From positions 124,001 to 188,000 of the IMG/VR virus record IMGVR_UViG_3300009093_000034: a stretch of DNA of 64,000 nt. One strand, 5' to 3'. Below the pieces are notes generated by a model, which saw nothing but the letters and a program-made list of their open reading frames with translations, was not told where the DNA came from and did not search any database. Shown piece after piece: positions 5,340 through 29,889 of this stretch; within the stretch, counting starts at the first letter, position 1; each line of letters opens with the position of its first letter. The position numbers were made by a program, and so were the translations under genes.

Positions 5340-5421
5340 GGTGGTCGTGGAGAAATGGTAGCCTCGCTAGATTGTGGATCTGGTGCTTAATCGCGTGCGG
5401 GTTCGAGCCCCGTCGACCACC
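5340..5421 (+). tRNA. tRNA-His(GTG), unusually long variable region
   Basis: G-1:C73, loop TT-GTG-GA, 13-nt variable region. Confidence 0.85.
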
Positions 5422-5458
5422 CTTTGATGGAATCACTAATTTGTAAGAGGTGATTGCT

Positions 5459-6530: not shown

Positions 6531-6535
6531 TACAT

Positions 6536-6622
6536 AGAGTAGTACGTTAGCGGCTATACAGCACGCCTGGAAAGTGTGTTTCTCGGGTAACCGAGACGTG
6601 AGTTCGAGTCTCACCTACTCTG
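6536..6622 (+). tRNA. tRNA-Ser(GGA)
   Basis: Loop CT-GGA-AA, long variable arm, G73. Confidence 0.9.
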
Positions 6623-6629
6623 TCATTTT

Positions 6630-10237: not shown

Positions 10238-10338
10238 GGCTCGGGTGCCTTGACGGTGCAGGGAGATCGCGTGAAAACGATCTGCGGCTGACAAATGGTA
10301 GGCCCGTTTAGACGTTCGACTCGTTCACCGAGCCTCCA
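10238..10338 (+). tRNA. Atypical tRNA with tRNA-Sec/allo-tRNA-like fold; anticodon loop CGTGAAAA
   Basis: Extended acceptor, 5-bp D stem around ACGGTG, 6-bp anticodon stem, long variable arm, 4-bp T stem, encoded CCA. Confidence 0.6.
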
Positions 10339-20787: not shown

Positions 20788-20994
20788 AGAAAAGATAGTT
20801 CGGTTAACGGTGTTGGTCTTTACTACTGTCGGGATCCTCTCCCTTATGAGTGTAAAGAGCTGATCCGACCAGGCGAGCAGTGCGAGAAGGAAAAACAGGC
20901 GTTACAGAGATGGATGTGACGTCAATGCCTGATCATCGCGTCGCGTACTTGAGGGACAATAACCTGACAAAACCCTCAGGATCTACTTTTTCAC

Positions 20995-21068
20995 AGGTCA
21001 ATCGTCTAAGTTAGGACGCAGGAGCTTCCGTGCCACCCTGAGTATGGGTTCAAGTCCCATGAGACCTA
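20995..21068 (+). pseudogene. Degenerate tRNA (Gly-TCC-like) with 14-nt anticodon loop
   Basis: D arm TCGTCTAAGTTAGGAC, perfect T arm, CAGG/CCTG stem. Confidence 0.5.
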
Positions 21069-21226
21069 AACGGAACAGGTCGGTTAATAACGACGTTGAA
21101 GAATAGTCCTTCACGCCAGCTTGCTGGAAGGGTATTAAGGGCGAGTAAGCAACGGAGTAGGCCAGCGGACGAATATCCGCCAATGGAGGTAATCAACCCT
21201 CCCCTATAAGTTCCACTTTTTATATT

Positions 21227-21375
21227 GGATATGTGGCGAAACTAGTAACCGCGCTGGCCTGGAGGGGAACTTGATTACACACCCTCGGAATCTGGCGCTC
21301 GGTCGGTGAGCGAAATCAAGTAGCAAGATCCGTAAATAGACTCCGAGCTTGTAGGTGCGACTCCTATCATATTCA
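21227..21375 (+). ncRNA. tRNA-Leu-like shell with ~90-nt pseudoknotted insertion
   Basis: GGATATG/CATATTC-A, Leu/Ser-type D arm, T arm; ACTTGATT pairs with downstream AATCAAGT. Confidence 0.65.
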
Positions 21376-21486
21376 AAAGAGGAAGCAATTCCTGACTTCT
21401 ACGGAACGTCAGGTGGAAAACTCTTTGCTATACACCCAGCTAATAACTGGCACGCGGATGGTTCACTGAAGTTTCAGTCCGCACAT

Positions 21487-21558
21487 GCCTCTGTCGTCTA
21501 CAGGAAGGATCCCTGGTTTTCACCCAGGCGGACGTCGGTTCGAATCCGGCCAGAGGTA
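21487..21558 (+). tRNA. tRNA-Glu(TTC)
   Basis: CCTGG-TT-TTC-AC-CCAGG. Confidence 0.9.
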
Positions 21559-21631
21559 TAATTGGTCATTCGATCAAAACAAGGATCTTTTTGCTACCTT
21601 AGGACCGTTTGGTACGCAAAAGGAGAATTTT

Positions 21632-22748: not shown

Positions 22749-22753
22749 TCTTT

Positions 22754-22842
22754 TGGGGTGCTTTTGGGAGGGAAACACGGTTCGAGTCCGTGGATGCTGG
22801 GTGCGGCGACGGCCACCGGGGGTTCGATTCCCCTCACCTCAA
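22754..22842 (+). tRNA. Atypical tRNA (Ser-CGA-like) whose anticodon loop is T-loop-like
   Basis: TGGGGTG/CACCTCA, CACGG-TTCGAGT-CCGTG, 25-nt variable arm, T arm. Confidence 0.5.
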
Positions 22843-22930
22843 TACAAAATACTCTAGTTTTCTTACCTGTTAAATCTTAAACTAATCTCCGTTAGGAGAA
22901 AAATTAGGAATTACCAGGAGGTAATGATAT

Positions 22931-28216: not shown

Positions 28217-28314
28217 AGGCGTCTTCTGGACTGATTGGAAACGGGTTCGATTCCCGTTGCGCCTAAAAACTTTCCCTCACTCGTACGAGATGAGGCGACC
28301 TCAATTTAAGGAGG
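28217..28314 (+). ncRNA. tRNA/Y-RNA-like element in the TROVE leader
   Basis: Perfect T arm 28241-28257; CGCCT can pair with 28218 or 28293 AGGCG; CCTC/GAGG hairpin covers the RBS. Confidence 0.45.
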
Positions 28315-28320
28315 TTGTCT

Positions 28321-29889
28321 ATGTCTAGAATGGCAAACAACCCCAAGGCTGCTACTGCAGCTAAGACCATGAGGAACATTCCTCAGGCAGATACTTTCAA
28401 CAAGGCAGGAGGACGAGCATATTCCAAGTCGGCTAAGGTCGAGCTTGCGGATCTCTTGTTCTCAAACTTCTTGTCCGGAGACACTTACCGAAAGGAAAGT
28501 GAAGTCTCCAAGAGGATCGAGGAGCTTGCTTCTCAGATCGAAGACAAGGAGTTCTTGGCCAAGGCCGCTCTTTACACTCGTAATGAGCTTGGCATGAGGA
28601 CCATGAGCCATCTGTTGGCAGGTGAGATCGCTTCCAAGAACTACGCTTCTGGCTCCGGCTGGGGACGTACCTTCTTCGATGCAATCGTCTACCGTGTCGA
28701 CGACATGGCTGAGATCCTTGGTTACTTCCTCGGAAAGGACCACAAAGCAATCCCTAACTCCCTAAAGTCTGGCTTCTCGTAAGCCTTCGATCGTTTCGAC
28801 GCCTACCAGTTGGCCAAGTATCGTGGTGACAGCAACGCTGTAAAGCTTGTTGACATTGTTCGACTTGTCCACCCGAAGGGAAACGAAAAGAACAAGACTG
28901 CTCTTGAGCAACTTGTTAAGGGAACCCTAAGAAACACCAAGACTTGGGAGGCTAAGGTCTCCGCAGCAGGTCAGAAGGCAACTTCCAAGGAAGCTGTCGC
29001 TGCTACCGCTGAGGCTTGGGAAGACCTTCTTAAGGAGAACAAGCTTGGTTACCTTGCTTTGATTCGTAACTTGACGAACATCGCCAACTCTGTTGATGAT
29101 GCTACGTTTGAGACGGCTCTGGCTCAGGTGATCGATGAGAAGTCTGTAAAGACCTCTCTAGTTCTTCCTTTCCAACTCTACATCGCTGCAAAGCAAGTAG
29201 AGAACGAGGGAAGGATCAAGAATCACAGCAGAATGTCAAAGGTGATCGACGCGCTGACCGCAGCCATCGACGTTTCTTTGTCCAACGTTCCTAAGCTCGA
29301 GGGCAAGACTCTCGTTGCAGTGGACATCTCTGGATCAATGGACTCTCGTCTATCAGCCATGGGTCAAGCTCGTGTTGTTGACGTAGCAACTCTCTTCGGT
29401 GTTGTCTTGGCTAAGGCTAACGATGCTGATTTGGTTCGCTTCAACACCAGTGCTTCCTACTCTGTTGTTCCTAAGTCTAGGTCTACTCTTGACTCTGTCA
29501 AGAGCTTGGCACAGACCGGTGGTGGTACTGCCTTCGAGTCCATCATGTACTTGATCAACCAGTCACAGACTGTCTACGATAGGATCTTGGTTCTATCTGA
29601 CATGCAGTCTTGGTCAGGAAAGACCGGAGGAGACTTCGCTCGCCTTGTCCAAGAGTACAGAAACAACAAGAAGCGTCCTAACATGACCTTCCTTTCGTGG
29701 GACCTCCACGGAGGAACCTCTCACCAGGTTCCTGAGTCTGATCCTCGTTCCATCGTCCTAGGAGGATGGAGTGACAAGATCTTCGACATCTTGGCAGAGA
29801 CCGAGACCGATCGAAACGCTCTAGTGAAGACCATCGAAGAGTACGAGATCAAGGTTCCTACCAAGGAACGAGCTCGTAAGACTGCGTAA
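28321..29889 (+). CDS. rsr: Ro60/TROVE-vWA RNA-binding protein interrupted by one in-frame TAA (28780-28782)
   Basis: NKAGGRAY, YTRNELGMRT, *AFDRFDAYQLAKYR continues in frame, LVHPK, TWE, ALIRNL, vWA VDISGSM and GGT..SDMQ. Confidence 0.88.

Follow-up and report, generated by a model that had tools for sequence, protein, structure and literature searches.

A 149-nt tRNA-like gene with insertions in the anticodon loop and variable arm in the tRNA array of a rhizosphere jumbo phage

The tRNA array of a jumbo phage contained a 149-nt tRNA-like gene (positions 21227 to 21375 of the window, plus strand; element positions 1 to 149), and this locus raised the question of whether such a gene yields a decoding tRNA after removal of its extra sequence, is a tRNA gene in decay, or encodes a tRNA-shaped RNA with another job. 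The window, i.e., the whole 64,000-nt stretch analysed, corresponded to bases 124001 to 188000 of a 305,833-bp virus record (IMGVR_UViG_3300009093_000034) with direct terminal repeats, and the source of this 305.8-kb jumbo phage record was a rhizosphere metagenome assembly. A sequence-only reading had described the element as a tRNA-Leu-like body whose anticodon and variable arms were replaced by a pseudoknotted domain.

tRNA frame and genomic setting of the element

The acceptor, Leu/Ser-type D arm, T arm, and A73, which the sequence-only reading had called intact, were all read in the sequence: (i) the 5′ acceptor strand (21227 to 21233) paired with 21368 to 21374 in 7 bp including one G·T (GGATATG/CATATTC), and A73 lay at 21375; (ii) the D arm (21236 to 21252) was of class II type, with a 3-bp stem GCG/CGC and an 11-nt loop containing A14, A15, A18, G19, and A21; and (iii) U47 and U48, the latter pairing with A15, preceded the T arm GTAGG–TGCGACT–CCTAT (21349 to 21367). 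All these features lay on the plus strand, and the core tertiary residues were all in place: U8, A14, A15:U48 (U124 of the element), A21, G19:C56, U54:A58, and G53:C61.

The elbow carried A18:G55 instead of G18:U55, the T loop UGCGACU (with G55) being paired with UAG, not GG, in the D loop. The UAG D loop and the UGCGACU T loop recurred together in many normal-sized phage tRNAs obtained by T-arm pattern retrieval, and the elbow of the element thus represented a known working variant rather than decay; UGCGACU plus an altered D loop suggests an A18:G55 variant of the tRNA elbow. Across the viral contigs L009 to L058, the T loop UGCGACU was common in phage tRNAs, and the D loop usually had UAG, CAG, or AAG for GG.

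The Rfam tRNA model (RF00005) matched 21227 to 21375 end to end (model positions 1 to 71, 26.9 bits, E = 0.0025) with a 61-nt insertion, which fell just below the gathering threshold of 29 bits, and ARAGORN at default settings called the element neither as tRNA nor as tmRNA. The same unit was kept as a block in a rearranged relative (X11; see below). The element is a discrete, real tRNA-derived gene with an intact tRNA core.

The phage genome harbored about 50 tRNA genes, in a long array on one strand. The upstream neighbour of the element was a weak tRNA-like sequence (20995 to 21068; 27.3 bits) with two acceptor mismatches and a 14-nt anticodon loop, and further low-scoring tRNA-like sequences were present in the array. 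Downstream followed tRNA-Glu (21486 to 21559), an RNA ligase gene (PF09414; 21632 to 22273, beginning 257 nt downstream of the element), a gene for a Ro60/TROVE protein with a vWA domain on the strand of the element (28321 to 29889), and a CCA-adding enzyme gene (39354 to 40742). Searches of the phage genome found neither a tRNA-splicing endonuclease (PF01974) nor a class Ia aminoacyl-tRNA synthetase, and no part of the insert had a paralogous copy in the phage's own genome. The sole RNA run with matches covered only the conserved part of tRNA-Glu and a stretch upstream of 20970.

Several other unusual RNAs were observed in this genome. Positions 22753 to 22845 held a tRNA-Ala/tmRNA-like small RNA (weak Rfam tmRNA match, 21.9 bits) in which the acceptor contained G3·U70 and A73, the T arm was normal, and another T-arm-like hairpin (CACGG–UUCGAGU–CCGUG) occupied the place of the D and anticodon arms. 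A tRNA with the amber suppressor-type anticodon CUA was located at 35775 to 35849 (68.6 bits), and a simple comparison of ORF lengths gave no clear sign of TAG reassignment. The CCA end was encoded in a 101-nt class II tRNA-like gene at 10238 to 10338, whose anticodon loop measured 8 nt (CGUGAAAA). The class II shape (3-bp D stem and long variable arm) was also displayed by tRNA-His(GUG) (window 5341 to 5422) and tRNA-Cys(GCA) (111974 to 112061 of the phage's own genome), the discriminators of which were as expected (C73 and U73, respectively).

Interrupted anticodon and variable arms

Folding was performed with only the acceptor (element positions 1–7/142–148), D (10–12/24–26), and T (125–129/137–141) stems enforced. 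The optimum took the shape of a cloverleaf in which two arms were long (−39.0 kcal/mol), while the unconstrained minimum-energy fold reached −40.3 kcal/mol and was not tRNA-like for the window sequence; in the commoner sequence variants (see below), the cloverleaf was also the unconstrained optimum. The anticodon arm was composed of 27–31/66–70, an internal loop, 36–40/56–60, and a 15-nt loop, and the variable arm of 71–76/117–122 (GCUCGG/CCGAGC), 77–78/113–114, 80–81/110–111, 84–86/105–107, and a large apical loop. In stability, the unconstrained fold did not exceed shuffles (z = 0.34), and the observed −39.0 kcal/mol compared with a mean of −38.9 kcal/mol for shuffled inserts. Three alternative pairings were rejected: CUGGCC with a GGUCGG loop was sterically incompatible with the hairpin carrying that loop; a single long hairpin (M2) was optimal for X11 only and had two A·C mismatches in every other variant; and a helix 30–32/121–123 was broken in X11.

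In the constrained fold, 21253 to 21263 (plus strand) contained position 26, the 5′ anticodon-stem strand CTGGC, and the loop start C32 U33 G34 G35 A36, with pair probabilities above 0.93. A 25-nt insertion (insertion 1; 21264 to 21288, plus strand, the junction being ambiguous by 1 nt), which matched no Rfam family, followed inside the anticodon loop, and behind it came A37, A38, the 3′ stem strand TCTGG (21291 to 21295), and position 44 (21289 to 21296 in all, plus strand). The 3′ part of insertion 1, CCCTC, paired back on the anticodon, so that the helix GAGGG/CCCTC (21262–21266/21282–21286), already noted in the sequence-only reading, enclosed a 15-nt loop with ACTTGATT (21269 to 21276). 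That reading had found no complementary anticodon-stem strand; in fact, TCTGG paired with CTGGC behind the insertion, as C-G, U·G, G·U, G-C, and C·U, with G26 pairing with position 44. The stem was weak (two G·U pairs plus one mismatch) and degraded relative to its paralogues.

The variable arm occupied 52 nt (21297 to 21348, plus strand): a base helix GCTCGG/CCGAGC (21297–21302/21343–21348) and a 40-nt extension (insertion 2; 21303 to 21342, plus strand), the apical region of which carried AATCAAGT (21314 to 21321). Both interrupted arms had paralogues in the phage's own class II-shaped tRNAs. TCTGG was identical to the 3′ anticodon-stem strand of tRNA-His; the D arm and the 5′ anticodon-stem strand resembled those of tRNA-Leu(GAG); and when the insertion was ignored, the anticodon loop CUGGAAA was identical to that of tRNA-Ser(GGA) (6535 to 6624), as was the variable stem CUCGG/CCGAG. 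In silico deletion of both insertions produced a 90-nt class II tRNA with the anticodon GGA that ARAGORN accepted at default settings, and recognition needed the joint deletion of insertion 1 and most of insertion 2. The strand match to tRNA-His, the loop and stem matches to tRNA-Ser(GGA), and the ARAGORN call together show that the anticodon and variable arms were not replaced, contrary to the sequence-only reading; both were present, each with an insertion. The element differed from the phage's own class II tRNAs in the 25-nt insertion, the 40-nt extension, A73 together with a Ser anticodon, and the weaker anticodon stem.

As transcribed, the element had no contiguous 5-bp anticodon stem with a 7-nt loop, which was restored only by in silico deletion, and the suggestion that the RNA could be non-decoding held for the transcript as it stands. 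Since codons were unreadable in this form, the element is an unspliced tRNA or else a tRNA-shaped RNA that serves another purpose. Under the former explanation, the 25-nt hairpin, perhaps together with the variable-arm extension, would be excised and the halves sealed, e.g., by the product of the adjacent RNA ligase gene, yielding a decoding class II tRNA(GGA). Removal of the 25 nt would restore the loop of tRNA-Ser(GGA) with U33 and purine 37 correctly placed, and comparable hairpins were present in otherwise good tRNAs of the same and related phages. In the phage's own genome, but outside the window, a class II tRNA of 42 bits (G000:C1:55611-55721) carried a 28-nt hairpin insertion with the loop CUUAU..AA, while well-scoring tRNAs of related huge phages (L004:6174-6276, L096:3549-3651, and L091:251-349, with the anticodons UAU, GGA, and CUU) had hairpin insertions of 24 to 28 nt in the anticodon loop, two of which shared the start AAUGC with the insertion in the own-genome tRNA. 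All four hairpins prolonged the anticodon stem and contained no bulge-helix-bulge motif.

A precedent is provided by Lak megaphages, whose tRNAs contain 'enigmatic', highly conserved introns (Devoto et al. 2019, PMC6784885). To judge from that description, the likeness lies in tRNA genes of huge phages whose length exceeds what bacterial tRNA finders accept, and in conserved insertions, not of group I, that sit in the anticodon region and for which no removal mechanism is known; a conserved anticodon-loop insertion in an otherwise good phage tRNA, as in Lak, was found in the element and in four further examples. The Lak phages, however, infect gut Prevotella and belong to a lineage different from that of this soil/rhizosphere phage, and the second insertion in the variable arm, complementary to the first, was peculiar to the element.

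Against excision stood several observations. No group I or other Rfam intron signature was detected: the group I model (RF00028), which did recognise such introns in tRNAs of a related phage, had no match at E ≤ 10 locally or at E ≤ 1 over 37 kb. A group I remnant, which would also need a P3-P7 core sequence not seen here, was rejected. The insertion site (36/37 or 37/38) would fit an archaeal/eukaryal intron, but the fold contained no 3-4-3 bulge-helix-bulge motif, the 5′ junction lay inside a helix, and the phage had no splicing endonuclease gene. Excision of the 25 nt alone would leave the 52-nt variable arm, and ARAGORN rejected this product at default settings. Moreover, the anticodon stem was weak; bacterial Ser identity calls for G73, with which A73 conflicts; a normal tRNA-Ser(GGA) is already encoded by the phage; and the match between insertions 1 and 2 would be left unexplained. 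An intron-containing decoding tRNA is considered a serious but rather unlikely explanation.

Related huge phages harbored further long tRNA genes. In a related 388-kb phage, a 208-nt group I intron interrupted tRNA-Leu(UAA) (L002:2263-2566), and directly behind this gene lay a 155-nt Leu-type tRNA-like RNA (L002:2570-2724), whose 'anticodon' stem was capped by a tetraloop, so that no decoding is possible there either, and whose variable region measured about 90 nt. A pattern made from this analogue retrieved its own two copies only. A second, weak group I model match of 167 nt (L002:3732-3898; 22.7 bits, below threshold) was located just upstream of the ligase gene.

The two insertions of the element were complementary to each other. 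AATCAAGT matched ACTTGATT perfectly over 8 bp (element positions 88 to 95 with 43 to 50), as the sequence-only reading had noticed; such a match arose anywhere in the insert in 3.6% of shuffled inserts (p 0.036), and between the two apical loops in 0.06% of shuffles (p = 0.00056). The apical loops of both extended arms probably kiss, which would tie the arms into a closed domain. The pseudoknot of the sequence-only reading was thus right about the 8-bp complementarity, although a contact between the apical loops of two extended arms describes it better.

The anatomy originally proposed, in which a pseudoknot of GAGGG/CCCTC and ACTTGATT/AATCAAGT replaces the arms on a leucine-accepting body, was examined as an H-type pseudoknot to which the analysis added an embedded hairpin, CGCTC/GAGCG, and it is very unlikely. 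Both helices of the sequence-only reading were present in the sequence, and in X11 the changes C72U and C85U would turn two pairs of the embedded hairpin into wobble pairs; these would, however, be tandem G·U pairs. The best H-type pseudoknot energy from a crude search was unremarkable against shuffles (p = 0.16), the 3′ strand of the anticodon stem was present, and the embedded hairpin, considered as a third helix, had weaker support than the competing variable-arm helix 71–76/117–122, which was homologous to the variable stem of tRNA-Ser(GGA) and showed a true compensatory change in X11.

The leucine part of this anatomy draws on E. coli LeuRS, which needs A73, A15:U48, and D/T-loop tertiary pairs but neither the anticodon nor the variable arm, minimal tRNA-Leu variants lacking both arms still being charged (PMC9976931). 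A73 and A15:U48 of the element fit these rules, but A18:G55 stands in place of G18:U55, no leucine anticodon (NAG or YAA) was contained in the element, the loop residues of which read GGA, and these residues and the variable stem were those of the phage's tRNA-Ser(GGA); the label Leu is uncertain accordingly. Ser-type features were the long variable arm and the loop CUGGA..AA, but the discriminator was A73 rather than G73, the arm measured 52 nt, and the anticodon was interrupted or buried. To judge from these residues, leucylation of the element is possible, and so is serylation.

The kissing match also allows a bolder reading, in which the two insertions would form one functional bipartite module, either as a new phage RNA domain on a tRNA scaffold or as the recognition structure for a new way of removing insertions, neither group I nor bulge-helix-bulge, linked to the adjacent RNA ligase. 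Such a module is improbable. Its insertion-removal version, if true, would also account for the hairpins of 24 to 28 nt in other tRNAs of this group and for the Lak 'enigmatic introns'.

Natural variants and distribution

Contigs from five other metagenome runs (X3, X5, X8, X10, and X11; mine and soil) spanned the element and were approximately 95 to 97% identical to it. Ten element positions varied among these relatives: (i) position 2, G to A in X5, turned a G·U of the acceptor stem into A-U; (ii) position 125, G to A in X3 and X11, did the same in the T stem; (iii) position 111, U to C, turned G·U into G-C; (iv) position 85, C to U in X11, turned C-G into U·G; (v) X11 combined C to U at position 72 with G to A at position 121, which turned C-G into U-A as a compensatory change; (vi) positions 23, 54, and 123 showed various changes at unpaired sites; and (vii) position 101, G to A, hit only the weak apical pair 91:101, which was peculiar to the window sequence. 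Pairing was thereby kept in six of the seven substitutions at paired positions, including the double change C72-G121 to U-A, and the kissing strands had no substitution. The fold had been derived from the window sequence alone, and none of its pairs except 91:101 was broken in any compared variant. The chance that two of the four private changes of X11 would strike and compensate one predicted pair was estimated at about 0.01. The support for the predicted fold consists of this one compensatory pair plus a few wobble changes.

X11 kept a block from 21225 to 21392 with different flanks on both sides. Upstream, it joined at 21225 directly behind a hairpin (window 20963 to 20990), so that 20999 to 21224, comprising the weak tRNA unit of 20995 to 21068 and its spacer, were absent; downstream, it diverged past 21392 into sequence absent from the window's phage genome. 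Because conservation in X11 extended only across 21225 to 21392, the conserved block coincided with the tRNA-like unit. In X3, the closest relative, 82 other bases stood in for most of tRNA-Glu together with its 3′ flank (window 21505 to 21595). The tRNA array is undergoing remodelling between near-identical phages.

Beyond these relatives, megablast and blastn against 50,697 phage records matched the neighbouring tRNA-Glu only. A protein search with the RNA ligase gave seven related huge-phage loci (47 to 73% identity), in which nhmmer found no match to the element, and a protein search with the upstream AAA ATPase gave no related loci. In IMG/VR, the T-arm 15-mer retrieved only ordinary tRNAs and chance matches; the helix pattern retrieved nothing in IMG/VR and, in JGI metagenomes, only two copies of the same phage; and five related phage records contained no match to a covariance model built on the 98-nt insert. 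The homologue search proposed with the sequence-only reading hence gave five near-identical relatives and no distant homologue.

These data bear on the explanation that the element is a young tRNA pseudogene, i.e., a class II gene disabled by two insertions and now drifting, in which the residual pairing is a leftover. Relative to X3, the element had five changes in 149 nt and the adjacent spacers had four in 158 and three in 110, i.e., about equal divergence. This similarity to the flanking spacers fits a pseudogene, as do the folding energy equal to that of shuffles, the anticodon stem degraded relative to paralogues, the other low-scoring tRNA-like sequences in the array, the neighbouring unit gained or lost between relatives, and the distant homologues not found in the above searches. 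It is countered by the three frame stems and all core tertiary positions being intact, by the pairing kept in six of seven paired-position substitutions with one compensatory pair in an arm, by the 8-bp match between two independent insertions, which is improbable by chance, and by the retention of a unit with tRNA-like boundaries in the rearranged context of X11. Unconstrained decay among homologues, which the sequence-only reading had named as evidence against its own view, accordingly received a divided answer: the pairs of the fold were kept in relatives, but the divergence from X3 was spacer-like. A pseudogene is judged unlikely.

Known RNA classes and the role of the element

The Rfam 15 search of 20900 to 21600 at E ≤ 10 matched only tRNA and none of the ribozyme, riboswitch, group I intron, tmRNA, and YrlA models. 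The topologies of HDV, pistol, twister, and hatchet were rejected, since the helix order compared by hand fitted none of them and Rfam gave no match; a mini-tmRNA or short tag frame had no support. The element resembled tmRNA in having a tRNA-like domain plus a pseudoknotted extra domain, but it had a full D arm, A-U rather than G3·U70 at pair 3:70, no tag reading frame, and a much smaller size. It shared with T4 stable RNAs C and D (species 1 and 2; rnaC and rnaD) a location inside a phage tRNA cluster, since these are likewise unexplained RNAs of about 120 to 140 nt, and with rnaC a tRNA-like T arm and an acceptor-like 3′ part; rnaC, however, had no full cloverleaf frame (17.5 bits, tRNA-Sec only), as opposed to the complete tRNA frame of the element, and no sequence similarity was seen. 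Likenesses were also present within the phage itself: the anticodon-loop residues and variable stem of tRNA-Ser(GGA), and the D arm and anticodon-stem strands of the tRNA-Leu(GAG) and tRNA-His paralogues.

A Y-RNA reading was attractive because the phage has a Ro60-like gene and YrlA RNAs mimic tRNA. [quoted passage not shown] YrlA-type Y RNAs (RF02553; Chen et al. 2014) and the element are alike in tRNA mimicry with T and D arms and a Levitt pair, in processing by tRNA enzymes, which is predicted for the element, and in an RNA-repair context with Ro60 and RNA ligase. The element would then be a partner of the phage Ro60 (TROVE) protein, a YrlA-type mimic in an 'open acceptor' orientation, with the TROVE/Ro60-vWA gene on the same strand. 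In YrlA, though, the Ro60-binding stem is made by the two ends of the RNA and a closed hairpin serves as the 'acceptor', whereas the element had an open acceptor and an internal extra domain. The Rfam YrlA model had no match at E ≤ 10, the motif GNCGAAN0-1G was absent and the nearest string, AGCGAAAT, loses its C in X11, and the distance to the Ro60-like gene was about 6.9 kb, known Y RNAs lying within 4 kb. The Ro60-like reading frame itself contained an in-frame TAA at 28780 (TAA, not TAG). Directly upstream of that gene, a mini tRNA-like hairpin (28219 to 28266) with a canonical T arm (ACGGG–UUCGAUU–CCCGU) was observed; Rfam gave no YrlA there, and this mini RNA is a better candidate Y-RNA-like partner than the element. 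That the element itself serves as a Y RNA has very little probability.

We tentatively prefer to read the element as a stable, non-decoding tRNA-like RNA that is matured like a tRNA, at somewhat less than even confidence. A paralogue of the phage's own class II tRNAs would have gained two expansions, the anticodon-loop hairpin and the variable-arm extension, with the 25-nt hairpin predicted to pair with and bury the anticodon. The transcript would be trimmed by RNase P and 3′ processing and given CCA (the phage encodes a CCA-adding enzyme), and a stable tRNA-shaped RNA may then accumulate with no part in decoding. Through its tRNA-like surface and extra domain, it could act as a ligand or decoy for LeuRS or SerRS, tRNA-targeting nucleases, or repair enzymes, a role that would suit a neighbourhood of tRNA and RNA-repair genes (RNA ligase, Ro60-like protein, and CCA enzyme).

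The usual interpretation of phage tRNA arrays is that they supplement codon reading or provide spares when defences cleave tRNAs. The perfect tRNA core of the element, its buried anticodon, and its apparently tied arms suggest that some array members may have a role outside decoding; or else tRNA insertions may be removed in huge phages by a route not yet described. The element offers a concrete, clonable 149-nt test object for the question of megaphage 'enigmatic introns', and its value for this is raised by the hairpin-bearing tRNAs, RNA ligase, CCA enzyme, and Ro60-like gene in the same or related phages.
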